63,901 nucleotides of DNA, filler included, from Octopus bimaculoides (GCF_001194135.2; 5 parts of 5 records of this genome joined end to end with filler, not necessarily neighbours in it); one strand, 5' to 3'; positions 1,094 through 20,729 are shown, counted from the whole stretch's first letter. Program-made: numbers and translations. Notes: a model not told the origin generated them from the letters alone.

Positions 1094-1235
1094 TCATGAA
1101 TCATTCGTCAAGCCAATACATTGTTGGAAGTGTTGCCTGTGGTTAGGCTGCGGTCCAATTTTAGACAACATGAAGAGATTATCTGTTGAATTAATCCCAA
1201 CACTGACATGAATTGAAGTAGAGGAAGGACAAACT
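1094..1235 (-). CDS. Putative terminal coding exon X, copy A (unknown protein)
   Basis: Acceptor ttttattcag|; phase-2 frame VCPSSTSIHVSVGINSTDNLFMLSKIGPQPNHRQHFQQCIGLTNDS*; paralogous to 12023-12125 and 18753-18855, with several synonymous differences. Confidence 0.55.
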
Positions 1236-1959
1236 CTGAATAAAAATTTAAAAAAACACCACCTGCACTGGATTTGATCCTATGACTTAAGAGTATGCAA
1301 TCCAATATTTTATTCCCACAACCATAGCATTTCTGCAGGTGTATATACTTTGGCAGTTTATAATTAAATAATACCAGATTTAGTAACAAATTAGTTACTT
1401 TTAGCTCTGTTTTAATCGTTTAGCCCTAGGTCAGTCCTCCTCCAGTAGACCTATTATCCCAGAAGAACGTTTCTTATGACTAAACCCAAAAAGGACACTT
1501 TTGCNNNNNNNNNNNNNNNNNNNNNNNNNNNNNNNNNNNNNNNNNNNNNNNNNNNNNNNNNNNNNNNNNNNNNNNNNNNNNNNNNNNNNNNNNNNNNNNN
1601 NNNNNNNNTCCAATTTTAGACAACATGAAGAGATTATCTGTTGAATTAATCCCAACACTGACATGAATTGAAGTAGAGGAAGGACAAACTCTGAATAAAA
1701 ATTTAAAAAAACACCACCTGCACTGGATTTGATCCTATGACTTAAGAGTATGCAATCCAATATTTTATTCCCACAACCATAGCATTTCTGCAGGTGTATA
1801 TACTTTGGCAGTTTATAATTAAATAATACCAGATTTAGTAACAAATTAGTTACTTTTAGCTCTGTTTTAATCGTTTAGCCCTAGGTCAGTCCTCCTCCAG
1901 TAGACCTATTATCCCAGAAGAACGTTTCTTATGACTAAACCCAAAAAGGACACTTTTGC
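1154..1959. other. Identical 351-bp duplication flanking an N gap (probable assembly overlap artefact)
   Basis: 1154-1504 is repeated base for base at 1609-1959, with the gap exactly between the two copies. Confidence 0.8.
1323..1332 (-). CDS. Candidate 10-nt micro-exon, copy A
   Basis: ctgcag|AAATGCTATG|gttgtg. AG, length and GT are conserved at 12210-12219 and 18944-18953, but the donor is weak and the phase is unresolved. Confidence 0.3.
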
Positions 1960-2047
1960 AGGGCCTCCATCACTGGTAGGAAAAAGGGGGGATGAAACCA
2001 TCGATTGTTTGGTATCATCAGACCATTTATCTCAAGTGAATGCTTAC

Positions 2048-2063
2048 TACAGGAGGAATTCCA
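2048..2063 (-). CDS. Putative 16-nt micro-exon, copy A
   Basis: gcattcag|TGGAATTCCTCCTGTA|gtaagc; identical at 12480-12495 while flanking bases differ; phase 2->0 reads GIPPV. Confidence 0.5.
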
Positions 2064-2806
2064 CTGAATGCACCAAAGGTACAGCTGATGGTATTAGAAT
2101 GGTCAAGGGATAAAATCTAACACCAAAGAATAAGTAAAGTCCATGCAAAAGAGCTTGCTGCTACCAAATTTCATACACAACATTTGGCTTAACCACAGGT
2201 TAGGGGTTGAGTATTGAGATTGAACCTGAAATCACACAATTCCTAAGTAAACTTTTTAAAGCATATCAATGCTTGTGCCTGCTTTGTGGGTGTGAAAGTG
2301 GATGGCTGTATTTTAAATAGAAGTGGCCGTGGATGGCTGGCAAAGATATTTAATTTGAAGCTATATGGTTCCTGATTCAATCCCAATGCACATCAACTTG
2401 GGCAAGTGTTTTCTACCACAGTAATTGTTTGACCAATTTCTTGTGAATAAAATTTGGTAGATGGAAACTGTGTAGAAGACCAGCTGTTGCATGTACATTG
2501 AAGCCTCCCTCTGTCTACAGCACAATGTTATCTAAGGAAAAGACAAAGGCCAATACAGTTTCACAGTATGGCTGTGAGAAGGGAAAGGGCAGGATGAGAT
2601 ATCACAAGGCATCCAATCAAGTGTTTTAGCAATCCTGGACTGCTATTATTATTATTACCAAATTCAAAAAGGGAAAGGTACAATTAACTGCATTGATATT
2701 TGAACTCAGAATGTAGACAACCAAGACAAATATCGCTAAGCCTTCTACATGATGCTCTTATCACTCTGCCAATATACTGCACAGTAAATAAATCATATCA
2801 ACTAAC

Positions 2807-2840
2807 CTTAAAGTCGAAAAAGTATTTTGTTGCATATCTC
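2807..2840 (-). CDS. 34-nt exon Y1, copy A (RYATKYFFDFK)
   Basis: tttcttttgcag|G AGA TAT GCA ACA AAA TAC TTT TTC GAC TTT AAG|gttagt; same length and frame as copy B at 13637-13670. Confidence 0.7.
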
Positions 2841-3282
2841 CTGCAAAAGAAACAAATATTTTCATCACATCATCACAATCACCATCATTACTTCTGCATC
2901 AACTCACAAAAAGAACCATTACAGAAATGTCATTTTGTGTTTGTACATTTTATTATTTTAATCTAAATCTAGAATTCATTTCAATAGGTTTACTCTCTGA
3001 ATATCACCAGCTGTCATATTTATGGATGTTATGGATGTCTGTAGAGGATCAAACCTTCATCGATCATTAATCTTGAGAGAATGCTGAAGATTTTTGCAGT
3101 TTTCTCAAAAATGTATTTGAATGAGTTTTTTTATGGAACTAGATAGGTTAATAGTATTATTTTCTCTTCTTATTTTTATTATGCAAACTTTCTTTTCAGA
3201 TGCATATTGTTGTTGTCCCCCATTCCAGGGTCTCATGGGATTACACCTTCCACACCCTCAAAGTCAGCACACCTAATGTTTG

Positions 3283-3855
3283 AAGTGTCACACCCTAACA
3301 GTGGAAGGAATCTGTGAAGAGATAAACTCAGAAAGACCTGGGATGAAGTGGTGAACACAGCCTTCAAATGTTGGGCCACACAGAGGCAATGACAAACAAC
3401 CGAGACCTTTGGAGATATGCTCTGCTTGAAAAGACCCAGCAAGCCAAGTGAGATCATAGCTGTGGCATAAGCCGGTGTCGCATAACCAGCCCATTTAAGT
3501 GTACCCTTCAAGTATTGGGCAATATTCCGCGCTTAAGAAGATATGTTGAGTGAAGTGAAATTGTTGTTGTGGCTGATGCCAGCACCGCCTGATAGGCACC
3601 TGTGCTGGTGGCACATAACAAGCACCATTTCAGCGTGGTTGATGCCAGTGCTGTCGGACTGGTTCCCATACTGGTGGCACATAAAAAGCATCCACTACAC
3701 TCTCAGAGTGGTTGGCATTAGGAAGGGCATCCAGCTGTAGAAATATTACCAGATCAGATTGGAACCTGATGCAGTCTTCTGGCTAGCCAGTTTTCAGTCA
3801 AACCATCAAATCCATGCCAGCATAGAGAGCAGACATTAAATGATGATGATAATAA
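3283..3855 (+). mobile_element. RTE-clade LINE 3' fragment (decayed)
   Basis: C-terminal ORF remnant (TLTVEGI...RKTWDEVV), the shared 3' UTR (gtggttggcattaggaagggcatccagctgt) and an (ATG)n tail. Confidence 0.8.
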
Positions 3856-4084
3856 TGATTCACATTGTGCATGAATGTTTTATATTCAGAATCAATGTTC
3901 TTGATAATTGGTCACAACCACTTTACTCAGATGTCAAGAACCTTTCTTACAATCCTTGCTCTTCCCAATACAGAAGATTTCAGAATTGATGCAATTCTTG
4001 TAGTTACACAAAACTCAATAAAAGACAACTAAGATTATTAATTGTTCTAAGTTGATATCTTTATTGTTCCTTAAATTTGTCCTA

Positions 4085-4936
4085 CCTTGCTTCTCCTTGC
4101 CTGGCTGACTGGGGTAGCCAAGTACCCCCTCTATAATAAGACAACTATCTCTGCCTCTCTGTCATACACTAACCTCTTGACAGGCTCACAGCCATATCCC
4201 TCGATTCCTCCCCTTCTCTCAACCAGGAGCCCTTTGTCTTGCAAGTCACTTGGCAACTCCACAGGTGCTGGTGCCACGTGACAGCACCTGTGCCACTGCC
4301 ATGCAGGAAGTTCCCATGCTACTGCCACATAAAATGCGCTGAGTACACTCTGTAAAGTAGTTGGCATTAAGAAGGGCTTCCAGCAGCAGTGACCATGCCA
4401 AAACAAACAACTGGAGCCCGCTGTGGCCCTCCAGCTTGCCAGTTCCTATCAAACTATCCAATCCATGCCATTAAATGATGATGGTGATACATGATAATGA
4501 TGGTGGTGGTGTAAAAGGTCTTTACTTTTTATAATGGAATCAGGGCAAAATGAAGACAGACCAGGTTGAGATGACAATCATGTTAACTGACAGATCTTGC
4601 AGATCTAAACAGGATTATTATATATAATGGTAAATATCTTTACATGACTTTGTAGCACAGAAGATTTTAAAGATATAATTTCTTATACATTATTCGTTAT
4701 TTGTATCAAATTTAAGATTTGATTTGAATTTCAGCTTTATAAAAATGAGAAACTTTCATGAAAAAGCAATCAAGATTGGCAGATGATTTTATCCAAAGTT
4801 TGATGTCATCATCATCAACATCATTATCATCATTTAAAATCTGTTTACCATGTTAGCATAGGTTGGACTGTTTGACTGGAGGTGGCAAGGTGGAGAGCTG
4901 CAACAGGCTCCAGTCCTCTGTTTTGGCAAGGTTTCT
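4085..4936. mobile_element. RTE-clade 3' UTR fragments (+ copy ~4085-4500, - copy ~4805-4936)
   Basis: Same 3' UTR motif and (ATG/CAT)n tails as the copy at 9130-9780. Confidence 0.65.
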
Positions 4937-5184
4937 NNNNNNNNNNNNNNNNNNNNNNNNNNNNNNNNNNNNNNNNNNNNNNNNNNNNNNNNNNNNNNNN
5001 NNNNNNNNNNNNNNNNNNNNNNNNNNNNNNNNNNNNNNNNNNNNNNNNNNNNNNNNNNNNNNNNNNNNNNNNNNNNNNNNNNNNNNNNNNNNNNNNNNNN
5101 NNNNNNNNNNNNNNNNNNNNNNNNNNNNNNNNNNNNNNNNNNNNNNNNNNNNNNNNNNNNNNNNNNNNNNNNNNNNNNNNNNNN

Positions 5185-5212
5185 GTGTATGGAATAGGCT
5201 TGAGCCTTTTGT
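5185..5212 (-). CDS. Putative terminal exon, copy A (TKGSSLFHT..., truncated by gap)
   Basis: Acceptor ttaactgcaag|; identical to the start of the copy B exon 14448-14510; 61-nt upstream intron. Confidence 0.4.
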
Positions 5213-5273
5213 CTTGCAGTTAAGTACATACAAACAAAAATAGTGTATTAAAAGTTGCATAACCAGGACTTAC

Positions 5274-5286
5274 TGAAGTTGAAATA
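5274..5286 (-). CDS. 13-nt micro-exon, copy A (xISTS)
   Basis: atgttcag|TATTTCAACTTCA|gtaagt (consensus donor); phase 2->0 fits the upstream 56-nt exon. Confidence 0.65.
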
Positions 5287-5446
5287 CTGAACATATAGAT
5301 TCCATGTCTCATATCAACAATGTCATGGCTTCTCTTACTATTTCCTACATTTATATTTCCTTATATCGTTATCATATTTATACAACACAATCTCCTCATA
5401 ATTCAAAGAAAAAAAGACTTAAGCAGAATGTTACATAATCACTTAC

Positions 5447-5502
5447 TTGGCTTGTATGCGGTTAAAACCATCAATTGCTTCTTTTTTAAAGTCTTCAAAT
5501 TG
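5447..5502 (-). CDS. 56-nt exon, copy A (QFEDFKKEAIDGFNRIQA)
   Basis: ccttttctag|CAA TTT GAA...GCC AA|gtaagt; open in phase 0->2; the copy B paralog is 65 nt (+9, in frame). Confidence 0.75.
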
Positions 5503-5604
5503 CTAGAAAAGGTTACAAAAGTATTTGCTGTATGTTTATAATGACTGGATATGAAGAGTTGTATTTTGGACTAGTTTCAACTCTTCAATGAAGCAAAACA
5601 TTAC

Positions 5605-5620
5605 CTGACACATAGAAACA
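5605..5620 (-). CDS. 16-nt micro-exon, copy A (xVSMCQ)
   Basis: gttttttgcttaag|TGTTTCTATGTGTCAG|gtaatg; phase 2->0 fits the downstream 56-nt exon. Confidence 0.6.
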
Positions 5621-6104
5621 CTTAAGCAAAAAACAACTGATCTTTTTCTCAGCCCATGCTAACTTCCAGTAAAGAGCTGAAATCATTGACTGATGGGGGA
5701 TATTACCTAACTTGAGAAGTGATGCAGTAAAGGGACGTAACATAATACTACATGGCACTTCATCTTGCACTGTCAACTGATTTTGATATACCTCTCTTAA
5801 AAAGATTCTATGCAGTCACTAAAAGATAGCAGCAAATATCTCCCTTAAATCTTGCAAAAAACTAAAAGGTGTGGCTGTGTGTTAAGTCTATTATATGTAG
5901 CAAGTTTATATTTGAAAGGAGGAATGGGTACTTCTCTTACCAACCACAAACTCTACCTCTGCCCATCAACTGAAAGGTTATTTGTTGTCTTATCAGACAT
6001 GAAAAGAAGGAAAGCTATGATAACCTCAGCATGATTTTGAATACAGAATTTCGTGAAAGGTGTTATGCTGTTATTCAATCAGCTCAGCTACATCTTCATC
6101 AACT

Positions 6105-6552
6105 ATCATCATCATCAGCTTCATTCAATGTCTGTTTTCCATGGTGGCATGGGTTGGACTGTCTGACAGGAGCTGACTAGTCTCCATGTCTACTTTTGCA
6201 TTGTTTCTATAGCTTGATGCCCTTCCCAATGCCAACTACTTTATAGAGTGTATTGGATGCTTTTATGCAGCACCGGCATGGATGTGTATAGGCGGCACTA
6301 GACTGGGTGTATTTTATGTGGCACCAGCTCCCAATGAGTCTCCAAGATTATGAATGCTCAGCTAGGAAAGGATGCTGTGAGTATGCCAGTATGTAAGGAC
6401 AACTACACCTCTGCATAGCTTGACATATCTTGTCAAGCACAGCAAACCACCAGGAGTCCCAGACCCTGTCCTGTCATCCCCTCTGTAAGACCCAACATCT
6501 GAAGAACTCTCACCACTTCATCCCACATCCTCCTGGGTCTACTCCTTCCACT
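6105..6552 (-). mobile_element. RTE-clade LINE 3' fragment inserted in copy A only
   Basis: Encodes GRSRPRRMWDEVVRVLQMLGLTE plus 3' UTR and (CAT)n; the site is empty in copy B (~15818). Confidence 0.75.
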
Positions 6553-6639
6553 TTAAAGTGTTTTAAATAAGTTTTTCAGTAGGGACAGCTTAGTTTCCAT
6601 TTTCATTTGGTAAAGCTGTTTGTTGTTTGACCTCAACAT
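6553..6639 (-). CDS. Putative exon 'MLR', copy A
   Basis: Strong acceptor tttgttttttccttcag|. Phase 0 gives MLRSNNKQLYQMKMETKLSLLKNLFKTL*; phase 1 gives DVEVKQQTALPNENGN*. Frame unresolved. Confidence 0.45.
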   Translation of the reverse strand: MLRSNNKQLYQMKMETKLSLLKNLFKTL

Positions 6640-7275
6640 CTGAAGGAAAAAACAAATGGATGGAGAGGAAACTGTTGATTTGATCCAAATGCATGAAAGT
6701 GAGAGAATTGATGCTAAAGGCACCCAATAAGCAAATGGTGGTGTTAAACTGGGTGGCATGTAAACCCTGTACCCAGTTTCCTGATAAAGCAAAGGAGTTT
6801 GATGAAAACCAAACAGCTGGTCATCTTATGTCCATATGAATGAAAATAACAACCTGTAGATTGGAAATCATCATCATCACCATCATCATAGTTTTAATAT
6901 TCACATTATATAGCCTTCATGGGTCTGGCAGAATTCATTCACGTAGATGTTTTTTTACAGTGTAAGCATTTAATGTGTTTCCTTGGTGTTTAGACTCACA
7001 GGGAAAGACAATTGGAGCTAAACAACAATAACTGTAATAGTAACAACAATAACCACAAACATCACAGTCAATGCTTCTACTGCTACTGCTGCTGCTGCTA
7101 CTCCAACTATTTTAAAAAAGGAAGACCCCCAACAATTCACCTTAACAGCAAAACAATGCTATCTCTAAAAATGACTGTTAAGGGCTCTGGTTTGAGATAA
7201 AACAGATGAGAGATAAGAAGCCTGTGGTCAGGATGCTTGTCTGTTTCAGCTCACATTAACAGAGGATCTACTAAC

Positions 7276-7288
7276 TTATTTCCAACAA
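7276..7288 (-). CDS. Candidate 13-nt micro-exon, copy A (LLEI)
   Basis: tgtgtag|TTGTTGGAAATAA|gttagt; copy B differs by a synonymous TTG/CTG; only 55 nt from the upstream donor. Confidence 0.35.
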
Positions 7289-7343
7289 CTACACAAACTC
7301 AATATGCTGCCTCATAATAAATAAATAAATAAGAAGAACTCAC

Positions 7344-7377
7344 TGTCGTATATCCACAATGTTTTCTTGCTAGATTT
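7344..7377 (-). CDS. 34-nt exon, copy A (NLARKHCGYTT)
   Basis: atttcttttgcag|...ACG ACA|gtgagt; same 34-nt, phase 2->0 architecture as exon Y1. Confidence 0.65.
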
Positions 7378-7409
7378 CTGCAAAAGAAATAAAGGGACAC
7401 ATATCATCA

Positions 7410-7850
7410 TATAAGCTGGAGACTGATTTTAGATTGGCCAATAAAGTATTCTGGCAGAATATCTTCACACTTCGTAACAAGCCCTCTTCCATCCCTGCCA
7501 GAAAGAACTCACCTGGAATTCCTCTCTGTAAAAAGCAGAGCATTCTTTGGGGTGGAAGAGAATACTTTAAGGATCTATTCAATTTGATCAGGATAAGATC
7601 TTCTGGGTGACATGAGGTGCATCTAGGACTAAAGACTAACCTCACAGAGGCTAAAGTCGCAGAGGTGATTAAAGCACTCAAGTGTGGCAAGGCAGCTGAA
7701 GTGGATGAAATGTTAAGAAAATTAAAAGGAGAAGGTATTCTCTGGTTGATTTGTTTATAGCATGGACTTCTGAAAGGACACCAAAACAATGGCAGTCTGG
7801 GGTGATGATCCCAATTTTGAAAAAGGGAAGGAAAACTGAAGGAAACAAAT
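7410..7850 (+). mobile_element. Decayed RTE-clade LINE internal fragment (region upstream of and at the start of RT)
   Basis: Broken frame ...EYFKDLFN...EVIKALKCGKAAEVDEML... and ...PKQWQSGVMIPILKKG, typical of non-LTR RT domain 0/1. Confidence 0.75.
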
Positions 7851-8039
7851 GTTTGGACTAGGAATTCCTTGATTTGTATATGTGTTATTCCTTGTTTCTG
7901 TTCTGGGTTGATATAAAAACTATAAAAGTTACATGACAAGGACTTCTTGAATTTGAAATACTGAATATAAATATAAATTCTTTCTCAAATCAACATTGTC
8001 ATGGATACTTTTGCTATTTTCTACCATCCACCACCACCA

Positions 8040-8660
8040 TCACTTAGCATCCATTGTCCACAGTGGCATGGGTTGGATGCTTTGACCAGAGATGGTAAGG
8101 TGAGGGACTGTACCAAGCTCTAGTCTGATTTGGTATTATTTCTACGTTTGGATGCCCTTCCTAACACCAACCACTCCAAGAATGTAATGGGTACCTTTAT
8201 GTGCCACCTGCAGGAGTGCCAGTTCTATGGCACTAGTATCTGCCACAACTACAATGTCACTTGGCCTCATGGGTCTTCTTCTCAAGCACAACATATTATC
8301 AAATGTTGCAGTCATAGTTCATTGCCTCCATGAGGCCTGATGCTCAACATTATCATGATGATGATGATGATCATCATCATCATTTAACGTCTGCTTTCCA
8401 TGTTGGAATGAGAGAGACAGTTTGACAGGAGCTGGTCAGGCAGACTTCTGTCTGTGTTAGCAGGGTTTTTACAGCTGGATGCCCTTTCTAACACTATCCA
8501 CCCAGTGGAATGGATTGAGTGATCTTTGCATGGCCAGTTTTGACAAGATTTTTACAGATGGATGCCCTTCCAAATGCCAACCACTTTACAGTATAAACTG
8601 AATGCTTTTTAAGTGGCACCTGCACTGACAGGGTCACCAAGTAACTTGCAAGAAAAAATC
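8040..8660 (-). mobile_element. Stacked RTE-clade 3' UTR fragments
   Basis: Repeated 'ttccatg..catgggttgga...ggatgcccttcctaa..ccaaccac' after (CAT/CAC)n runs. Confidence 0.65.
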
Positions 8661-9129
8661 TTTTGGGAGGGGAGGGAGCATTGCAGGAGGTGATCTAAGA
8701 TGATGAACTGTTATAGTGAGCCAGAGGAGGTACAAGATTACGTGGCCAGAGGGAGGAGGGAAAGATCAGGAATGAGGACAGAAACAGGTGTGTTGCCATG
8801 AAGGAGATACATGGTTACCAAACCTGAGGGAAGAGCAGGAGAATGAGAAAGACGGAGGGAAATAATGAGAGAAACGGTGGTGAAGAGCTGGACAAACTAA
8901 CAAGGGATGGAGATAAGAATGTAAAGGGGAAGGTCAAGGGCTAGAGGGTAGCAATGATACAGTGAGGAAGGAGGAAATGTGAAGAAGCGAAGAGATGTAG
9001 TTTGGTTTGTTGGGTTAGGGCAAGGGTCACCAAACTTCTATCATGGCAAGCCAGGTAACTGAGAGAATGATGAGGGCAGACTGTATAAACATTTTGTTTA
9101 ATACAATACAGTGAATACACAAAAAATAA

Positions 9130-9985
9130 AGACGACCAACATATTTATCAACAGTTGTGGCGTGCAAGAGAGACGATTGCGCTGGTATGGACATGTGGTG
9201 AGAATGGAGGAGGATAGCTGTGTGAAAAAGTGCCACACCCTAACAGTTGAGGGAACCCGTGGAAGAGGTAGGCCCAGGAAGACCTGGGCTGAGGTGGTGA
9301 GGCAAGACCTTCGTACATTGGGCCTCACCGAGGCGATGACTACTGACCGAGACCTTTGGAAATGTGCTGTGCGTGAGAAGACCCGGCAAGCCAAGTAAGA
9401 TCGTTGCCAGTGCCCCTGGACTGGTTCTTGTGCGGGTGGCACATGAGATGCACCATTTTGAGCGTGGCCGTTGCCAGTACCGCCTGACTGGCTCCTGTAG
9501 GATTTTCGAGCGAGATCGTTGCCAGTGNNNNNNNNNNNGCGGGTGGCACATAAAAGACACCATTTCGAGCGTGGCCGTTTTCGTGCGGGTGACACGTAAA
9601 AGCACCCACTACACTCTCTGAGTGGTTGGCGTTAGGAAGGGCATCCAGCTGTAGAAACTCTGCCAAATCAGACTGGAGCCTGGTGTTGCCATCCGGTTTC
9701 ACCAGTCCTCAGTCAAATCGTCCAACCCATGCTAGCATGGAAAGCGGACGTTAAACGATGATGATGATGATGATGATGAAAGCAACATTAGCAATAAGGC
9801 CAGTGGCACGTAAAAAGCACCCACTACACTCTCAGAGTGGTTGGCATTAGGAAGGGCATCCAGCTGTAGAAACTCTGCCAAATCAGATTGGAGCCTGGTG
9901 CAGCCATCTGGTTCGCCAGTCCTCAGTCAAATCGTTCAACCCATGCCAGCATGAAAAGCGGACGTTAAATGGTGATGATGATAAT
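9130..9985 (+). mobile_element. Young RTE-clade LINE 3' end plus a second 3' UTR copy
   Basis: Intact C-terminus VQERRLRWYGHVVRMEEDSCVKKCHTLTVEGTRGRGRPRKTWAEVVRQDLRTLGLTEAMTTDRDLWKCAVREK*, CpG-retaining 3' UTR, (GAT)n tail at ~9755-9780. Confidence 0.9.
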
Positions 9986-10149
9986 GATAATTATATCACA
10001 CCTAGTGCGCATAAATCCCAATTTCACAAACTAAGCAGCAAAAATAGTTCATGAAATTTGTGAAACTGGTGTTTAGCTTTTAAGATATCATCAATTTTTG
10101 CTTTACAGTTGTTGCATCCAACCAAGAGAATTGCTTTCAAATGTTCATC

Positions 10150-10615
10150 AGTCAACCTCATTCAATGTGCTGACTTCACATACTTCATTTTTGGAAATGT
10201 TTGCTCACAGACATAAGTTGTCCCAAACACTGGTGCCATACCAGAGGCAAATGAACTCTCATTGCAGGGGCTTACACAAAAGATACAGTGTAGCAACGTC
10301 TTCTTGAGTCTCCTTCTTCTGCAGGTACCATCCACTTTCAGACATTGGCACTTCTTTATGCAACTGTCCTCTTGCATTCATATGCCTCACATGTCCAGAC
10401 CAATGTGGTCTTCTCTCTTTCATACTACATTTGATTCCTCTTATGTCCAACTTTTCCCTCAATACATTTGCACGTTGTTCTACATGCACACTGATGATGC
10501 ACAACCACAAAAGCATAATGCCTTCATTTCTCTCCAATCTACACATGTCTTTTGCATTCTGAGCCCATGTCTCAATACCATGGAGTATAACCATTCACAG
10601 TCTTATGAATAGAGG
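10150..10615 (-). mobile_element. Decayed RTE-clade LINE C-terminal fragment
   Basis: LHGIETWA..KDMCRLERNEGIMLLWLC...LREKLDIRGIKC..ERRPHWSGHVRHM. Confidence 0.85.
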
Positions 10616-10659
10616 TAGAACTCTGAACTTCCTCCATCTGATCCTTATTCTAGAATAGT

Positions 10660-10860
10660 TCAAAACTTTGGCACAAGGCCAGCAACTTCAGAGAGGGCTA
10701 ATTCAATTAAATTGAACCCACTGCTCAATTTTTACTTATTCTATCAAATGTGTAAGGATGAAAGGCAAAGTCAACCTGAGCTGAAATTTGAACTCACAAT
10801 GTAAAGATGGATGAAATGCCACTAAGCATTATGCCTGCTGTGATAACGATTCTGCCAGCT
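10660..10860 (-). mobile_element. tRNA-derived SINE family S1 (CpG-decayed), shared with copy B at 16785-16960
   Basis: Core 'aaggatgaaaggcaaagtcaacc...tttgaactc'; same insertion at the orthologous position in both units. Confidence 0.75.
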
Positions 10861-10879
10861 CACAAGCTTATATATATAT

Positions 10880-11025
10880 ATCATCATCATCGTTTAGCGT
10901 CCGCTTTCCATGCTAGCATGGGTTGGACGATTTGACTGAGGACTGGTGAAACCGGATGGCAACACCAGGCTCCAGTCTGATTTGGCAGAGTTTCTACAGC
11001 TGGATGCCCTTCCTAACGCCAACCA

Positions 11026-11028
<3 letters not shown>
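10880..11028 (-). mobile_element. Young RTE-clade 3' UTR, truncated by (TA)n and a gap
   Basis: Near-identical reverse complement of 9620-9770. Confidence 0.85.
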
Positions 11029-11063
<35 letters not shown>

Positions 11064-11396
11064 NNNNNNNNNNNNNNNNNNNNNNNNNNNNNNNNNNNNN
11101 NNNNNNNNNNNNNNNNNNNNNNNNNNNNNNNNNNNNNNNNNNNNNNNNNNNNNNNNNNNNNNNNNNNNNNNNNNNNNNNNNNNNNNNNNNNNNNNNNNNN
11201 NNNNNNNNNNNNNNNNNNNNNNNNNNNNNNNNNNNNNNNNNNNNNNNNNNNNNNNNNNNNNNNNNNNNNNNNNNNNNNNNNNNNNNNNNNNNNNNNNNNN
11301 NNNNNNNNNNNNNNNNNNNNNNNNNNNNNNNNNNNNNNNNNNNNNNNNNNNNNNNNNNNNNNNNNNNNNNNNNNNNNNNNNNNNNNNNNNNNNNNN

Positions 11397-11830
11397 GTAG
11401 ATTTGGTCCAAATGCATGAAAGTGAGGGAATTCTCAGTAAAGTCACCCAAGAACCATTCTATTAATTATTTTGGTAGAAAACAAGAGAAATCTCAGTCAT
11501 GACATCTCTAATTAGAAACACATCAGAATGAACAGGTGACTTAGATGAAACTGCACCTTGTTACCTAATGTGATGCCACAGGTAGGCTAATGATATCGTT
11601 TACCTTATTTCTTAAATGAATTCTTAAGTCTTTAGAAAAACCTTCATAGATGACAGAATGTTGAAGGTTTTTGCAGGTTTATTTTTAATCCTTTAACAGA
11701 TTATTCAATCAAATGCAATGGATATTTATCCATATTGTCCTGAATTAATCATGCATTATCTTGTAGATTTAAGGTTTTGATTATGTGATTGTCTACTGAT
11801 GAAACCCAAACTGCTGGTCATGTCTACCTC
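11397..11830 (-). repeat. Segment W (older internal duplicate of the intron upstream of the MLR exon), unit A
   Basis: Matches 18199-18610; shares 'ttcttgggtg..tcactttcatgcatttggaccaaatc' and 'gaccagcagtttgggtttcatc' with 6660-6830 and 15945-16120; contains a partial piggyBac-like MITE at ~11686-11795. Confidence 0.7.
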
Positions 11831-12022
11831 CATATGAGTGCAAATGAGGACTTGTAGATTAGATGTTACTACTATTACTACCACTGCTGCTCCTACTACT
11901 ACTACTACCAGCACCACCACCACCACTACGAGAAAGAGAAGACCACAACAACCACCAGCATTACTACCACCATTACATTTACCACAGGACTACTGCAGTG
12001 TCAACTGACATTGTTGCAAGTG

Positions 12023-12125
12023 TCACCTGTAGTTAGGTTGCTGTCCAATTTTAGACAACATGAAGAGATTATCAGCTAAATTAATCCCAACACTGACATG
12101 AACTGAGGTAGAGGAAGGGCAAACG
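12023..12125 (-). CDS. Putative terminal exon X, copy B
   Basis: ctgtttattcag|c GTT TGC...: VCPSSTSVHVSVGINLADNLFMLSKIGQQPNYR*(TGA). Confidence 0.6.
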
Positions 12126-12479
12126 CTGAATAAACAGAAAAAAAATAACCAACAGCACTGGATTTGATCCTATGACTTAAGAGAATATAAAATATTTTAT
12201 TCCCACAACCATAGAATTTCTGCAGGTGTATATACTTTGGCAGTTTATAATTAAATAATACCAGATTTAGTAACAAATTAGTTACTTTTAGCTCTGTTTT
12301 AATTGTTTAGCCCTAGGTCAGTCCTCCTCCAGTAGACCTATTATCCCAGAAGAACGTTTCTTATGACTAAACCCAAAAAGGACACTTTTGTAGGACCTCC
12401 ATCACTGGTAGGAAAAGGTGAGGATGAAACCATCACTTGTTTGGTATCATCAGACCATTTATCTCAAGTGAATGCTTAC

Positions 12480-12495
12480 TACAGGAGGAATTCCA
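12480..12495 (-). CDS. Putative 16-nt micro-exon, copy B (GIPPV)
   Basis: gcgttcag|TGGAATTCCTCCTGTA|gtaagc. Confidence 0.5.
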
Positions 12496-13636
12496 CTGAA
12501 CGCATCAAAGGTANNNNNNNNNNNNNNNNNNNNNNNNNNNNNNNNNNNNNNNNNNNNNNNNNNNNNNNNNNNNNNNNNNNNNNNNNNNNNNNNNNNNNNN
12601 NNNNNNNNNNNNNNNNNNNNNNNNNNNNNNNNNNNNNNNNNNNNNNNNNNNNNNNNNNNNNNNNNNNNNNNNNNNNNNNNNNNNNNNNNNNNNNNNNNNN
12701 NNNNNNNNNNNNNNNNNNNNNNNNNNNNNNNNNNNNNNNNNNNNNNNNNNNNNNNNNNNNNNNNNNNNNNNNNNNNNNNNNNNNNNNNNNNNNNNNNNNN
12801 NNNNNNNNNNNNNNNNNNNNNNNNNNNNNNNNNNNNNNNNNNNNNNNNNNNNNNNNNNNNNNNNNNNNNNNNNNNNNNNNNNNNNNNNNNNNNNNNNNNN
12901 NNNNNNNNNNNNNNNNNNNNNNNNNNNNNNNNNNNNNNNNNNNNNNNNNNNNNNNNNNNNNNNNNNNNNNNNNNNNNNNNNNNNNNNNNNNNNNNNNNNN
13001 NNNNNNNNNNNNNNNNNNNNNNNNNNNNNNNNNNNNNNNNNNNNNNNNNNNNNNNNNNNNNNNNNNNNNNNNNNNNNNNNNNNNNNNNNNNNNNNNNNNN
13101 NNNNNNNNNNNNNNNNNNNNNNNNNNNNNNNNNNNNNNNNNNNNNNNNNNNNNNNNNNNNNNNNNNNNNNNNNNNNNNNNNNNNNNNNNNNNNNNNNNNN
13201 NNNNNNNNNNNNNNNNNNNNNNNNNNNNNNNNNNNNNNNNNNNNNNNNNNNNNNNNNNNNNNNNNNNTTCTTGTGAATAAAATTTGGTAGGTGGAAACTG
13301 TGTAGAAGACCAGCTGTTGCATGTACATTGAAGCCTCCCTCTGTCTACAGCACAATGTTATCTAAGGAAAAGACAAAGGCCAATACAGTTTCACAGTATG
13401 GCTGTGAGAAGGGAAAGGGCAGGATGAGATATCACAAGGCATCCAATCAAGTGTTTTAACAATCCTAGACTGCTATTATTATTATTACCAAATTCAAAAA
13501 GGGAAAGGTACAATTAACTGCATTGATATTTGAACTCAGAATGTAGACAACCAAGACAAATACTGCAAAGCCTTCCACTCGATGCTCTAATCACTCTGCC
13601 AACATACTGGACTGTAAATAAATCATATCAACTAAC

Positions 13637-13670
13637 CTTAGTTTCTACGAAGTGTTTCGCTGCAACTCTT
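13637..13670 (-). CDS. 34-nt exon Y1, copy B (RVAAKHFVETK)
   Basis: tttcttttgcag|A AGA GTT GCA GCG AAA CAC TTC GTA GAA ACT AAG|gttagt. Confidence 0.7.
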
Positions 13671-14447
13671 CTGCAAAAGAAACAAACATATTTTCATCAC
13701 ATCATCACAATCATCATCATTATTTCTACATCAATGCTCAAACGGAACCATTACAGAACTGTTATTTTGTGTTTGTACATTTTATTATTTTAATCTAAAT
13801 CTACAATACATTTGAACAGGTTCAATCTCTGATTATCACCAGGCATCATATTTGTGGATGTCTGTAGAGTATCAAACTGGAATGTATTTAGTGTACTAAG
13901 ATTTCTCTGTCAGCAAAAGCAGCCATGGTGAGTGAACGTCAGTTTTAGGTATGTTTTAACTGGCTTTTTAACAAGAGCATGACTCTTGCTAATAGGTAAA
14001 GCATCTTGGTTTTCCAAAAGGAACAAATGAATAAATGATATCACAAAGTATTATAAATGCTTCAAATTTTCATTAATTAAGCTTGAAACTCATCTTCGTT
14101 CATTCAAATTAAGCTTCTATAAATTACTCTAGAGAAAGACTTTTGTCATTGAATAACAAGCGATTCTTCCTTATCTCCATTCTATACTGCACACTGGCCA
14201 GTCCTTGGTCAGTTTTGGTAGCATCTCAGGCATTTTCAGAAGAGGTTGCAAGCCCTTTGATTTAACCCTTCCCCAATTATAGAGACAGAGACACTGTGAA
14301 TGTGTCCTAAGATATTTTACACAGTATAATGGCACTAATGCAAAGAAAGTAAGAAAGTTCAATTCATTTCTTTTGTTCTTGACTAAAGTTCATTATTTCA
14401 ATGTGAACTGGAGAAAGAAATGATTCTGAATTGAAAATCCCACCCCC

Positions 14448-14510
14448 TTATTCTGTTTCTCCCCTGTCTCTGTTCTTTGTGGGTGTATGGAATAGGCTTG
14501 AGCCTTTTGT
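14448..14510 (-). CDS. Putative terminal exon, copy B (TKGSSLFHTPTKNRDRGETE*)
   Basis: First AG 61 nt after the 13-nt micro-exon donor; open in phase 0 to TAA; no GT before the stop. Confidence 0.4.
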   Translation of the reverse strand, partial: TKGSSLFHTPTKNRDRGETE

Positions 14511-14571
14511 CTTGCAGTTAAGTACATACAAACAAAAATAGTGTATTAAAAGTTGCATAACCAGGACTTAC

Positions 14572-14584
14572 TGAAGTTGAAATA
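14572..14584 (-). CDS. 13-nt micro-exon, copy B (xISTS)
   Basis: atgttcag|TATTTCAACTTCA|gtaagt. Confidence 0.65.
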
Positions 14585-14748
14585 CTGAACATATAGATTC
14601 CATGTTGTCTCATATCAACAATGTCATGGCTTCTCTTACTATTTCTTACATTTATATTTCCTTACATCGTTATCATATTTATACAACACAATCTCCTCAT
14701 AATTAAATATAAAAGTAAATTTAAGCAGAATGCTATAAAATTACTTAC

Positions 14749-14813
14749 CTGACATCTTCGCCATCAAAATCTTTGGAATAGTAATCAATTTCCTTTTTGA
14801 ACTCTATATATTC
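14749..14813 (-). CDS. 65-nt exon, copy B (EYIEFKKEIDYYSKDFDGEDV)
   Basis: acttttctag|GAA TAT ATA GAG TTC AAA AAG...GTC AG|gtaagt; phase 0->2. Confidence 0.75.
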
Positions 14814-14927
14814 CTAGAAAAGTTTACAATAAAAGCATTTGTTGTAACTTTATAATAAAAGCAATGGTTTGACATTAATAATTCTATTTTGGACTGGTTT
14901 TGACTCTTCAATGAAATAAAACATTAC

Positions 14928-14943
14928 CTGACTCACAGAAACA
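14928..14943 (-). CDS. 16-nt micro-exon, copy B (xVSVSQ)
   Basis: ctttttttctgtttaag|TGTTTCTGTGAGTCAG|gtaatg. Confidence 0.6.
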
Positions 14944-15189
14944 CTTAAACAGAAAAAAAGCTAATCCTTTTCTCTATACATTCTAACTTCCAGGAAAGAG
15001 CTGAAATCATTGACTGATGGGGGATATTGCCTAACTTGAGAAGTGATGCAGTAAAGGGACATAACATAATACTACAAGGCATTTAATCTTGCACTGTCAA
15101 CTGATTTTGATATTCCTTTCTTAAAAAAAGATTTTATGCAGTCACTAAAAGATAGCAGCAAATATCTCCCTGAAACCTTGCAGAAAAAA

Positions 15190-15560
15190 GGCATGGCTAT
15201 GTGGTAAGAAGTCTGTTTACCAACCACATAGTTAAAGGTTCAGTCCCACAACATGTAACCACAGGCAAGTGTTTTCTACTATAACTTTGGGCTGACCAAA
15301 GTCTTGAAAGTGGATTTGGTTACAGAGACCGAAAGAAGCCTGCCACACATGTGTGTGTGTGCATCTTTGTTTATCCAGAACTACTGCTTGACAACCAGTG
15401 CTGGTGTGTTGATGCCCCGATAACCTAGCAGTCCACCAAAAATGATCAACAGAATAAGTACCAATCTTAAAAACAATAGGTACAAGGGTTGATACATTCC
15501 ACTAAAAATTATGAAAAGTGGTACCCCAGCATGGCCACAGTTTAGTGACTGAAACAAGAT
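15190..15560 (+). mobile_element. tRNA-derived SINE family S2 (CpG-decayed), copy B only
   Basis: 'ggctatgtggtaagaa...accaaccacat..ggttcagtccc' head and 'ccccagcatggccacagtttagtgactgaaacaag' tail. Confidence 0.75.
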
Positions 15561-15818
15561 GAAAGGTGAAAGATATATTGTATATTGCTGTATCAAGATA
15601 CACAGTGAGTCCATTAGCTTCTATTCCAAAGGAAGAATGGGTACTTCTCCTACCAGCCACAAACTTTACCTCTGCCTATCAGCAAAAATTGTTGTATGTT
15701 GTGTTATTAGACGTGAAAAGATGGAAAGCTATGTTGACCTCAGCACAATTTTGAATACAGAAATTAAAGAAAAGTGTTATGCTGTCATTTGATTGCTCAG
15801 CTAAATCTTCATCAACTA

Positions 15819-15923
15819 TCATCTGTAAAATGTCTTAAGCGAGTTTGTTAGAAGAGGCAGGTAAGTTTCATTGATATTTTGGTAGCGCTGTCTCAGACTT
15901 GTAAGAATTTCCAACCTCAACAT
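15819..15923 (-). CDS. Putative exon 'MLR', copy B
   Basis: Same acceptor as copy A. Phase 0 gives MLRLEILTSLRQRYQNINETYLPLLTNSLKTFYR* (12-nt in-frame indel versus A); phase 1 gives DVEVGNSYKSETALPKYQ*. Confidence 0.45.
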   Translation of the reverse strand: MLRLEILTSLRQRYQNINETYLPLLTNSLKTFYR

Positions 15924-16583
15924 CTGAAGGAAAAAACAAATGGATGGAGAGGAAACTGTTGATTTGGTCCAAATGCATGAAGGTGAGAGAACTGATGCTA
16001 AAGGCACCCAAGAAGCAGATGGTGGTGTTAAACTGGGTGGCATGTAAACCCTACCCTGTACCCAGTTTCCTGATAAAGCAAAGGAGTTTGATGAAAACTA
16101 AACAGCTGGTCATCTTATGTCCATATGAATGAAAATAACGACCTGTAGATTGGAAATCATCATCATCATAGTTTTAACATCCACATTTTATAGCTTTCGT
16201 GGGTTTGGCAGAATTCATTCATGTAGATGTTTTTTACAGTGTAAGGATTTAATGTGTTTCTTTGGTTTTTAGACTCCCAGGGAAAGACAATTGGAGCTAA
16301 ACAACAATAACTGTAATAGTAACAACAATAACCACAAAAGTCAAAGTCAATGCTGCTGCTGCTACTACTGGTCCCAATGCTGCTACTGTTACCTCCACGC
16401 TGTTTACATGCATTTTAAAAAAGGAATACTCTCAACAATTCACCTTCAGAAGCAAAGAAAAATCGTAAATCTCAAGATGACTGTTAAGGGCTCTGGCTGG
16501 ATGAGATAAAAGGATGAGGGATACCAAGCCTGTGGTTAGGATGCTTGTCTGTTTCAACTCACATTAACAGAGCATCTACTAAC

Positions 16584-16596
16584 TTATTTCCAACAG
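16584..16596 (-). CDS. Candidate 13-nt micro-exon, copy B (LLEI)
   Basis: tgtgtag|CTGTTGGAAATAA|gttagt. Confidence 0.35.
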
Positions 16597-16651
16597 CTAC
16601 ACAAACTCAATATGCTGTCTCATACAAAATAAATAAATAATAAGAACTAAC

Positions 16652-16685
16652 CTGTGTATATCCACAATGTTTTCTTGCTAGATTT
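16652..16685 (-). CDS. 34-nt exon, copy B (NLARKHCGYTQ)
   Basis: ctttcttttgcag|...ACA CAG|gttagt; stays 34 nt despite compensating changes versus copy A at its 3' end. Confidence 0.65.
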
Positions 16686-18198
16686 CTGCAAAAGAAAGAA
16701 AGGGACACAGATCATCATCATGATCTTCATCATTTTTATGTCTTGAGGCAAAGATAAACATCATAAGAATGTAACTTTAGTATAATTTCAGGAGAGGGCT
16801 AAGTCAATTACATTGCCCCCACTGCTCAGTTTTTACTTATTCTATCAAATGTGAAAGGATGAAAGGCAAAGTCAACCTGGGCTGAAATTTGAACTCACAA
16901 TGTAAAGATGAACGAAATGCCACTAAGCATTATGCCTGTTGGGCTAACAACTCTGCTAGGTCACTACTTTATAAATATACATATATATATAAATTACCGT
17001 GAATTTTTTTAGAGACACTTTCAAAATTATCAGAATATTGGACTGAAGATTTGGAATAGAGAAATTTTCATTCTCTTAACCATGAAACGATCGTATCCAA
17101 TTAACTAAAGACTTGTTTTGTTTATGCTTTTCCCTCCGGTTTTTTGTTCTATGTGTGCCATAAATATCGCCATCCGTTTAGAGAAAAATTTGTAGTTTAG
17201 AATCAGTAGTTCTTTGACTGCTATTTCTAAATTTTCAGTATGTTGGAGAAGCAACTCAATGCTAATCCCTGTATATTTATGATTATATATATATATATNN
17301 NNNNNNNNNNNNNNNNNNNNNNNNNNNNNNNNNNNNNNNNNNNNNNNNNNNNNNNNNNNNNNNNNNNNNNNNNNNNNNNNNNNNNNNNNNNNNNNNNNNN
17401 NNNNNNNNNNNNNNNNNNNNNNNNNNNNNNNNNNNNNNNNNNNNNNNNNNNNNNNNNNNNNNNNNNNNNNNNNNNNNNNNNNNNNNNNNNNNNNNNNNNN
17501 NNNNNNNNNNNNNNNNNNNNNNNNNNNNNNNNNNNNNNNNNNNNNNNNNNNNNNNNNNNNNNNNNNNNNNNNNNNNNNNNNNNNNNNNNNNNNNNNNNNN
17601 NNNNNNNNNNNNNNNNNNNNNNNNNNNNNNNNNNNNNNNNNNNNNNNNNNNNNNNNNNNNNNNNNNNNNNNNNNNNNNNNNNNNNNNNNNNNNNNNNNNN
17701 NNNNNNNNNNNNNNNNNNNNNNNNNNNNNNNNNNNNNNNNNNNNNNNNNNNNNNNNNNNNNNNNNNNNNNNNNNNNNNNNNNNNNNNNNNNNNNNNNNNN
17801 NNNNNNNNNNNNNNNNNNNNNNNNNNNNNNNNNNNNNNNNNNNNNNNNNNNNNNNNNNNNNNNNNNNNNNNNNNNNNNNNNNNNNNNNNNNNNNNNNNNN
17901 NNNNNNNNNNNNNNNNNNNNNNNNNNNNNNNNNNNNNNNNNNNNNNNNNNNNNNNNNNNNNNNNNNNNNNNNNNNNNNNNNNNNNNNNNNNNNNNNNNNN
18001 NNNNNNNNNNNNNNNNNNNNNNNNNNNNNNNNNNNNNNNNNNNNNNNNNNNNNNNNNNNNNNNNNNNNNNNNNNNNNNNNNNNNNNNNNNNNNNNNNNNN
18101 NNNNNNNNNNNNNNNNNNNNNNNNNNNNNNNNNNNNNNNNNNNNNNNNNNNNNNNNNNNNNNNNNNNNNNNNNNNNNNNNNNNNNNNNNNNNNNNNNG

Positions 18199-18610
18199 CA
18201 TGAAAGTGAGGGAATTCTCAGTAAAGTCACCCAAGAACCAATCTTTTAAATTATTCTGGTAGAAAACAAGAGAAATTTCATTCATGGCATCTCTAGTTAG
18301 AAACACATCAGAATGAACAGGTGACTTAGATGAAACTGCACCTTGTTACCTAATGTGATGCCACAGATAGGCTAATGATATTGTTTACCTTATTTCTTAA
18401 ATGAATTATAAGTCTTTAGAAAAACCTTCAGAGATGACAGAATGTTGAAGGTTTTTGCAGGTTTATTTTTAACCCTTTAACAGATTATTCAGTCAAATGC
18501 AATGCATATTTATCCATATTGTCCTGAATTAATCATGCATTATCTTGTAGATTTGGGGTTTTGATTATGTGATTGTATATAGATGAAACCCAAACTGCTG
18601 GCCATGTTTA
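18199..18610 (-). repeat. Segment W, unit B
   Basis: Paralog of 11397-11830; strong acceptor-like tttctcttgttttctaccag at ~18257, which is mutated to CAA in unit A. Confidence 0.7.
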
Positions 18611-18752
18611 TCTCCACTACTGCCAAGGCCACCACCACCACAAGAAAGATGACAACGACCCCACAACCACCATTACTACTGCTAGAGATACTGTCACCAC
18701 CACTATAGTTACCACATGTCTACTGCAGTGTCAACTTACACTGTTGCAACTT

Positions 18753-18855
18753 TTATCTGTAGTTAGGTTGCTGCCCAATTTCAGACAGCATTAAGAGATT
18801 ATCTGCTAAATTAATCCCAACACTGACATGAATTGAGGTAGAGGAAGGGTAAATG
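18753..18855 (-). CDS. Putative terminal exon X, copy C
   Basis: gtctatttattcag|c ATT TAC...: IYPSSTSIHVSVGINLADNLLMLSEIGQQPNYR*(TAA); stop at the same codon as copy B. Confidence 0.55.
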
Positions 18856-18974
18856 CTGAATAAATAGACAAAAAAATAACCATCTGCATTAGATTTGATC
18901 CTTTGACCTAAGAGTGTGTAATGCAATAGATTATTTCCAGAACCATCTCATTTCTACAGGAGTATCTACTTTGG

Positions 18975-20132
18975 TTAGGGTAGGGGCCCATCAAGGAACA
19001 GTCTTCAGCCCCCTCTTATTCATCATGGTCTTCCAGGCAATAAGAGAGGAATTCAAGACAGGATGCTCCTGGGAGCACCGTTATGCTGATGACCTTGCTC
19101 TAATAGCTGAGTTACTATCAGAACTAGAGAAGTTTCAGGAGTGGATGCAAGGTATAGAATCAAAGGGCCTTAGAGTGAATCTAGCAAAAACTGAAGTCTC
19201 AGTAAGTAGGAAGGCAGACAAATCAGGTAGATGGCACAGCTCGAACTGTAGAAAAGGCGTAGGTAGAAACTCCATAAGATGTACCCAGTGTAAGCTATGG
19301 ACACATAAGAGGTGCAGTAATATCAAAGGAAGGCTATCTGGGAAGATAGTTTTTGTGTATGGCAGATGCACAGGGGCAATAAACATTGAAAATGTGCAGA
19401 AAACAGCTTCTCTCACATGCTAGGGGGGAAAAACTAGAAGCAATTGGTAGCTTCCGTTAGCTAGGTGACCAAGTCAGTAACAGGGGTGCATTCTCTGAGA
19501 GTATAGCTGCTAGAATAAGAATAGTCTGGACAAAATTCAGAGAGCTCCTACCTCAGCTGGTAACAAAAGGCCTCTCACTCAGAGTGAAGGGTAGACTGTA
19601 TGATGCATGTGTGTGAACAGCCATGCTACATGGAAGTAACACATGGGCTGTGACTGTTGAGGACATGTGTAGGCTTGAAGGAAATGAAACCAGTATGCTC
19701 CGCTGGATGTGTAATGTCAGTGTGCATACACAACAGAGCGTAAGTGCCCTGAGAGATAAGTTGGACATAAGAAGCATCAGATGTGGTGTGCAAGAGAGAG
19801 ATGACTGTGCTGGTATTGTCATGTGTTGTGTATGAATGAGGAGAGCTGAATGAAAAAGTGTCACACCCTAACAGCGGAGGGAATCTGTGGAAGAGGTAGA
19901 CCCAGGAAGACCTGGGATGAAGTGGACAAGCATGACCTTTGAAAATTGGGCCTCATAAAGGCAATGACAAGCAACCAAGACCTTTGGAGATATGCTGTGC
20001 TTGAGAAGACCAAGCAAGCCAAGTGAGACCGTATCTATGGCCTATCCCAGTGCAGCATAACCAGCCCATTTAAGAGTACCCTTCAATCATTGGGCAATAA
20101 ACTGTGCTTGAGAAGACTTGTTAAGTGAAATC
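18975..20132 (+). mobile_element. 5'-truncated RTE-clade LINE with RT core
   Basis: VRVGAHQGTVFSPLLFIMV...YADDLALIAE...GLRVNLAKTEV, then a Cys-rich insert (CTQCKLWTHKRC) and C-terminal MLHGSNTWA...; frameshifts and stops present. Confidence 0.92.
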
Positions 20133-20249
20133 TTTTTTGGTTTTGTCATAAGAAACACTCTCTTGGGATAATAGGTCTGCTGGATCAGGACTGGCCTAGG
20201 GCTAAACAATTACAAGAGAACTGAATTGTTAGTAAATCTGGTATTCCTC

Positions 20250-20526
20250 CTCATCTTCATCATCATTTAACATCCGCTTTCCATGCTGGCATGGGTTGTA
20301 CAGTTTGACTGAAGACTGGTAAGCCAGTATGCTGCATCAGGCTCCAATTTGATCTGGAAAGGTTTCTAAAACTGGTTGCCTTTCCTAATGCCAACCACTC
20401 CGAGAGTGTAGTAGAGTGCTTTTTACGTGCCACCAGCATTAACCACACTCCATTGGTGCCTTTTACATGTCACTGGCATGGATGCCAGTCAGGCAGTACT
20501 GGAATTAGCCATGACAATGATTTCAC
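20250..20526 (-). mobile_element. 3' UTR and tail of the same RTE copy, now inverted
   Basis: Read on the - strand it starts gtgaaatc, where the + body stops, and ends in (GAT)n. Confidence 0.75.
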
Positions 20527-20729
20527 ATACTTGCTAAGTAAACTTTTTAATGCATATCAATGCTTGTGCCTGCTTTGTGGGTGTGAAAGTGGATGGCTGT
20601 ATTTTAAATAGAAGTGGCCGTGGATGGCTGGCAAAGATATTTAATTTGAAGCTATATGGTTCCTGATTCAATCCCAATGCACATCAACTTGGGCAAGTGT
20701 TTTCTACCACAGTAATTGTTTGACCAATT

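Follow-up and report, generated by a model that had tools for sequence, protein, structure and literature searches.

Candidate short minus-strand exons that differ between the units of a head-to-tail tandem duplication in Octopus bimaculoides

The micro-exons of the schistosome micro-exon genes (MEGs) are symmetric, 6-36 nt in length and multiples of three. They follow one another in series and make up most of the coding sequence, between a 5' exon for a signal peptide and a longer 3' exon that ends the frame; MEG transcripts include exon-skipping variants and are expressed in secretory tissue. In venom-type families such as the conotoxins, the snake three-finger toxins and PLA2 the exons are accelerated, and the flanking intron and splice regions are better conserved between paralogues; their products are secreted, have a cysteine framework and show dN/dS above 1 over many copies. 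The sea-urchin Sp185/333 (SpTransformer) genes comprise two exons, have well-documented transcripts and proteins, and lie in microsatellite-flanked tandem clusters which evolve in concert. Dscam-type genes contain clusters of mutually exclusive exons. Here we compare these systems with a locus of Octopus bimaculoides (GCF_001194135.2), for which a first-pass annotation had proposed a tandem array of at least three copies of an unrecognised, rapidly diversifying micro-exon gene on the minus strand. The analysed sequence covers positions 1-20729 of the window, that is the whole stretch of 63,901 nucleotides including filler; it has about 36% G+C and contains six runs of N.

The locus is a genuine head-to-tail segmental duplication of two full units and one partial unit of about 6-7 kb each:

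1117-11832, minus strand: unit A, delimited by self-BLAST against unit B; contains long and short interspersed nuclear elements (LINEs and SINEs)
11966-18616, minus strand: unit B, about 6.7 kb including 1.65 kb of N; the most complete copy
18696-20729, minus strand: partial unit C; unit sequence only at 18737-18974 and 20523-20729 (about 0.5 kb)

Units A and B align by self-BLAST in seven collinear blocks of 83-94% identity, and the aligned skeleton shows 12.3% mismatch overall. The tandem order is real, because the junctions A/B (within 11397-12513) and B/C (within 18198-20729) are each read without a gap. The two units are paralogues and not an assembly duplicate, since they carry unit-specific insertions and deletions of transposable elements (TEs), namely the block 7411-10683 in A and a SINE which is intact only in B (15189-15615). 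The earlier proposal of at least three copies stands with respect to the head-to-tail order of A, B and the start of C; the proposed exons occur in two copies only. The first of the two blocks of unit C, 18737-18974, is 82-85% identical to A and B, the second, 20523-20729, is 98% identical to A 2232-2438, and the remainder of C is made up of LINE and SINE sequence with none of the proposed exon chain.

The identity between the units is a mosaic. Runs of 100% identity, for example about 270 nt at A 2491-2760, adjoin tracts of 80-88%, and A matches C with 98% in one block and 82% in another. Such patchiness is the mark of gene conversion or unequal crossover, which homogenised the units patchwise and left tracts of 98-100% identity beside others of 82-88%. 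Collinear units, mosaic identity and true paralogy are all present, as is expected of a tandem duplication under concerted evolution. The mosaic identity and the position of variable elements inside a homogenised frame are shared with the Sp185/333 clusters, and the octopus unit junctions and cassette flanks are likewise rich in (GAT)n, (GGT/GTT)n and (AT)n repeats. In contrast to Sp185/333, the octopus locus is known from its sequence alone.

The evidence for exons comes from three short segments per unit (splice-site scores here and below are those of a generic metazoan position weight matrix):

16652-16685 (B) and 7344-7377 (A), minus strand: K(a), exon-like cassette of 34 nt; acceptor-like score 13.7 (B) and 11.2 (A)
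13637-13670 (B) and 2807-2840 (A), minus strand: K(b), cassette of 34 nt, an old paralogue of K(a)
14749-14813 (B, 65 nt) and 5447-5502 (A, 56 nt), minus strand: variable exon-like segment with a GTAAGT donor in both copies

The pattern TTCTTTTGCAG-N34-GT(T/G)AGTT occurs four times in the analysed sequence, each time on the minus strand, compared to an expectation of 0.06. The spacing is exactly 34 nt in all four K copies, one frame (offset 1) is open in all of them, and the donors of K(a) are GTTAGT in B and GTGAGT in A. K(a) and K(b) are about 65% identical over 154 nt, which marks them as old paralogues. When they are compared in the two units, 34/40 and 33/40 positions of the flanks are identical, as against 19/34 and 14/34 of the centres (p=0.006 and 0.0003). 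Between the K(b) copies of A and B the centre differs at 12 of 34 positions and the flanks at only 1 of 40 (p=0.0002); the centre of K(a) is not more divergent than its flanks between A and B. The 56/65-nt segment has donors which score 12.6 and 8.5 and a fair acceptor. Here 25 of 56 aligned bases are substituted, versus 11 of 53 in the neighbouring intron (p=0.007), a stretch that also diverges to an unusual degree; the net 9-nt indel keeps the frame.

The AG...GT segments are found at the minus-strand places where they had been predicted, and the minus orientation of the best splice-like signals holds up. Both K cassettes as well as the 56/65-nt segment are probably genuine exons, because neutral decay fails to explain why acceptor- and donor-like motifs are kept between old paralogues at a fixed spacing around a divergent centre. 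Our preferred explanation, for which we see about an even chance, is that these cassettes are short minus-strand exons of an unannotated, lineage-specific transcript, which was duplicated in tandem and partly homogenised. Each unit would carry a few such exons with good splice signals, that is the two 34-nt cassettes and the 56/65-nt segment. Splice flanks and spacing would stay constant, while the centres stay different or diverge beyond the neighbouring intron, a pattern that may be read as diversification of paralogues against a background of concerted evolution. Two of the predicted segments, the 34-nt cassette and the 56/65-nt segment, behave like real exons whose centres are unusually divergent; the idea of a rapidly diversifying gene family refers to two copies only, which are too few to measure selection or to estimate dN/dS. 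If the cassettes are real exons, they would belong to an unannotated, cephalopod-restricted gene whose paralogues remain distinct at a few short exons, the rest of the unit evolving in concert, and would represent a candidate family of diversified secreted or recognition peptides in a lineage for which little is known of such families.

K(a) and K(b) resemble Dscam-type mutually exclusive exons in their identical length and phase, their preserved splice flanks and their divergent centres. Unlike in Dscam clusters, each unit has only two K cassettes, and the 3 kb that separate them hold a SINE as well as further candidate exons. No docking/selector pairing of the Dscam type was seen at the octopus locus, where no search aimed at such pairing was made.

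The first-pass annotation had gone further and joined one 34-nt segment and the variable segment with the following short segments to one chain:

14988-15000 (B) and 5664-5676 (A), minus strand: 13-nt segment 13a; acceptor -0.1, donor 1.9
14928-14943 (B) and 5605-5620 (A), minus strand: 16-nt segment; moderate splice-like sites, no more diverged than its flanks
14572-14584 (B) and 5274-5286 (A), minus strand: 13-nt segment 13b; GTAAGT donor, weak acceptor of 0.6
14448-14510 (B) and 5185-5212 (A, cut by a gap), minus strand: proposed terminal segment ending in TAA; acceptor -1.9

The chain of 34-13-16-65-13-63 nt in B and 34-13-16-56-13-28+ nt in A is indeed open in both copies, and no claimed splice junction spans a gap. 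In A, the proposed terminal exon runs into the gap 4937-5184 after 28 nt, and its stop codon is therefore unread. An open chain is, however, what chance provides. A search for chains from ATG to stop with up to six exons, in a region of 2.4 kb and with thresholds as lax as the weakest sites of the proposed chain, yielded 232 codons on the minus and 212 on the plus strand. All of 30 shuffled sequences gave in-frame chains of 145-224 codons, every one longer than the observed 83. The in-frame chain carries no weight, since it is expected by chance at the site quality that it needs. About 40% of all AGs reach a score of at least 0 and about 22% of all GTs one of at least 2, and the sites of 13a as well as the acceptors of 13b and of the terminal segment fall in the bulk of these and are indistinguishable from random ones. 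Exon-like AG...GT pairs are common, with 35 on the plus and 62 on the minus strand, many of them inside TEs. The donor GT[AG]AGT was counted 13 times on the minus strand, with 8.8 +/- 2.9 expected and A/B duplicates counted twice; once these duplicates are discounted, strong donor hexamers are not enriched on that strand. The particular chain of 6-8 exons has no support beyond chance, and its peptide of about 67-83 residues is not established. Neither 13b nor the terminal segment is more divergent between A and B than the flanking introns. A third, degenerate copy of 13b with about 85 nt of its upstream flank was found at 7923-8024 in the TE block of A (78% identity, donor GT lost).

No start codon had been reported for the chain. 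Immediately before K(a), each copy has candidate ATGs in frame, followed by a run of hydrophobic residues (MMKIMMMICVPFFLLQ in B, MMICVPLFLLQ in A). As a candidate start codon and signal peptide they give only a weak lead. The hydrophobic stretch is a translated pyrimidine tract, the copies of K(b) disagree in frame upstream due to a 2-nt indel, and in A the TE block of 3.3 kb abuts the candidate start.

The likeness to schistosome MEGs, which the earlier annotation had drawn, applies to the serial short AG...GT segments, the tandem multi-copy arrangement, the variable peptide segment and the lack of a recognisable domain. It fails for the feature that defines MEGs, because the octopus lengths of 34, 13, 16, 56/65 and 13 nt are not multiples of three; neither a clear signal-peptide exon nor sequence similarity to MEGs was found. 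With the venom-type families the locus has in common the tandem duplication and, in some of the segments, the better preservation of cassette flanks than of exon centres. A divergence of the exon above that of the intron is seen for K(b) and the 56/65-nt segment; it is not seen for K(a) between A and B, the 16-nt segment, 13b and the terminal segment. Unlike in venom-type families, the predicted octopus peptides contain no cysteine framework, no conserved signal and propeptide region is shown, and the divergence spills over into the intron. The closer analogy, which concerns behaviour, is that to accelerated-exon or concertedly evolving tandem families; membership in these is not demonstrable.

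None of the sequence searches gave the putative peptides a relative. Among 5.8 billion proteins, those of O. bimaculoides and O. vulgaris included, not one has a word triplet in common with the 51-residue peptide of the B chain. A composite of 351 residues, built from all open reading frames (ORFs) of the skeleton and the alternative exon frames, found nothing at E <=10 in a protein database which holds octopus proteomes. Likewise, an ORF of 92 residues, which spans the two segments described below as island 3 and the P cassette, has no relative among 1.84 billion representatives. That the protein is not recognisable, as was stated earlier, is in agreement with these results. Look-ups of exact ORFs were empty even for two TE control ORFs and so have no bearing on the locus. 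A metagenome scan for the core of 13b found nothing, Rfam at a permissive threshold gave two chance-level hits only, and ARAGORN detected no tRNA in the analysed piece. The literature searched on micro-exon genes of cephalopods or octopus and on tandem lineage-specific secreted genes in O. bimaculoides contained nothing relevant. TGATGA boxes upstream of the K cassettes suggested a C/D snoRNA; this reading was rejected, as a D box is missing and Rfam gave no match. Skews in base composition between the strands were too small to serve as an indication of transcription.

Several of these results weigh against an exonic nature of the cassettes, among them the failure of the protein searches, the ease with which shuffled sequences give in-frame chains, the random quality of several splice sites, the absence of a donor enrichment and the small number of copies. 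The rival explanation is a non-genic segmental duplication of TE-rich intergenic or deep-intronic DNA, in which the AG...GT segments are chance motifs carried along, and the divergent patches are unconverted tracts or stem from minor replacements and indels, for instance by microsatellite slippage or by local tandem duplication. We regard this as quite possible. The frequency of AG...GT segments on both strands and inside TEs speaks for it, as does the absence of any homologue or annotated protein. When divergent segments were ranked by an objective scan, a microsatellite indel came first, and the area of high divergence at the 65-nt segment also takes in about 65 nt of the upstream intron, so that the patchy divergence is not strictly exonic. 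Part of the local divergence is accounted for by a 26-nt tandem duplication (2.1 copies, 14828-14882), which is intronic, is present only in B and lies just upstream of the 65-nt segment. The 82% between A and C indicates that unconverted divergence may be high, and against such a background of 20% the 12 of 34 mismatches in K(b) reach only p=0.03. That frames stay open across the variable segments is only slightly improbable, at an estimated p of about 0.1-0.3 allowing for six frames. What a non-genic duplication leaves unexplained is that the acceptor- and donor-like motifs are the best-kept bases at a 34-nt spacing in all four K copies, between paralogues of 65% identity, and that the centre of the 56/65-nt segment shows about double the divergence of the adjacent intron, itself divergent, and ends at a consensus GTAAGT. 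If the cassettes prove not to be exons, what remains is a TE-rich segmental duplication of the ordinary kind, and the main lesson would be that the eye can always pick out in-frame chains of micro-exons where DNA is AT-rich.

Improbable in our view is the model of the first-pass annotation as a whole, according to which each unit holds a complete gene of 6-8 exons, organised like schistosome MEGs, for a rapidly diversifying and possibly secreted protein of about 83 residues. The chain open in both copies, the ATGs with a hydrophobic stretch upstream of K(a) and the placement of a variable exon between constant ones agree with it. Beyond the chance level of the chain, its poor splice sites, the doubtful signal peptide, the TE block at the candidate start and the missing protein match, it is contradicted by the position of K(b) downstream of the supposed stop codon and by lengths with which exon skipping would shift the frame, unlike in micro-exon genes. 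Very improbable is that the cassettes are alternative, mutually exclusive or untranslated exons of a larger host gene, or of a spliced non-coding RNA, which extends beyond the 20.7-kb piece. K(a), K(b) and the 16-nt and 13-nt segments are 1 modulo 3 and the 56/65-nt segment is 2 modulo 3, hence the strong exons form two interchangeable phase classes; in addition, no convincing first exon or promoter lies inside the unit, and the array is cut by the edge of the piece. Yet non-coding exons should not outpace introns in divergence, and no flanking constant exons were seen. The explanation by short duplicated exons of an unannotated transcript can also be extended to a larger octopus-specific array, in which short cassette exons of the K and the 56/65-nt types are kept different between units and introns and constant parts are homogenised. 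We consider this extension unlikely; if true, the array would encode in the germline a whole repertoire of small variable peptides that have no known relatives, following a logic like that of diversified immune or venom arrays.

Two further segments adjoin each other in both units:

15819-15924 (B) and 6553-6640 (A), minus strand: island 3, divergent; begins just after a pyrimidine-rich AG (tttgttttttccttcag|ATG), a site seen by eye and given no matrix score
15925-16041 (B) and 6641-6757 (A), minus strand: P cassette, 93-100% identical between A and B

Island 3 has one frame that stays open in each copy, over 34 and 28 codons and despite a 12-nt indel, and that closes with a stop in both. About 80 nt of the P cassette are repeated at the unit tail, at 18198-18280 and 11397-11480, where they run into gaps. 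These gaps, 11064-11396 in A and 17299-18197 in B, occupy the equivalent unit position beside (AT)n and directly after the tail copy of P, and could hide a second variable segment after it.

The skeleton of the units had been described as free of TEs, which is not the case. A random 21-kb locus of O. vulgaris was matched against the analysed piece; besides the evident TEs, its repeats match old SINEs inside the skeleton, namely S(a) at 16807-16962 and 10736-10861 and the B-specific block 15194-15573. The units held old SINE copies before they duplicated, and each later gained or lost TEs independently. The unit-specific elements are:

15189-15615, minus strand: SINE insertion, intact only in B; would fall in intron 1 of the proposed chain
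7411-10683, unstranded: A-specific TE block between S(a) and K(a)

The block of A contains LINE ORF2 pieces at 7374-7860 (plus strand), a LINE tail at 9111-9398, a LINE piece at 10259-10594 (minus strand) and SINEs at 8064-8620 and 9588-9988. The longest ORF of the piece (189 residues, 7370-7939, minus strand, no Pfam hit) was rejected as a gene, as it is antisense to the frameshifted LINE ORF2 pieces. Directly downstream of K(b) lies S(b), an older copy of the S(a)-type element, whose designation as SINE is based on 65% similarity to S(a). Because SINEs adjoin both K(a) and K(b), the K cassette was considered as part of a composite SINE; this was rejected since the order is swapped (S-K vs K-S) and K itself has no match in the O. 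vulgaris locus. In unit C a reverse transcriptase ORF at 18899-19420 (Pfam RVT_1) has its best relatives in TE-derived proteins of Octopus bimaculoides and O. vulgaris, with 63-74% identity, which marks the host as an octopus.

The segments 1154-1504 and 1609-1959 are 100% identical over 351 nt and flank the gap 1505-1608, and B is collinear there without the duplication. At this gap the assembly left an overlap unmerged and thereby lengthened unit A falsely by about 455 nt. Unit A is further swollen by the TE block and by an A-specific stretch at 3030-4936. The gap 12514-13267 of B matches 356 continuous bases in A.

The unit junctions 11833-11965 and 18617-18695 consist of (GGT/GTT)n-like low-complexity sequence and are plausible sites of unequal crossover. 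An element of 88 nt at the head of the units (1406-1493 and 12293-12380) has an inverted copy in C at 20132-20219 beside a SINE, which points to a rearrangement or to a TE fragment common to the units. Beyond the left end of the array, an inverted repeat (441-629 vs 930-743, about 190 nt, 76% identity) could be an inverted pair of TEs. An ORF at 1-123 on the minus strand (MERSFMLSSSDSEFEGFSTEDIEISKKRMNELQKH...) continues past the left edge of the piece; its start is acidic and rich in serine, which we take to be reminiscent of the N-termini of piggyBac-type transposases.

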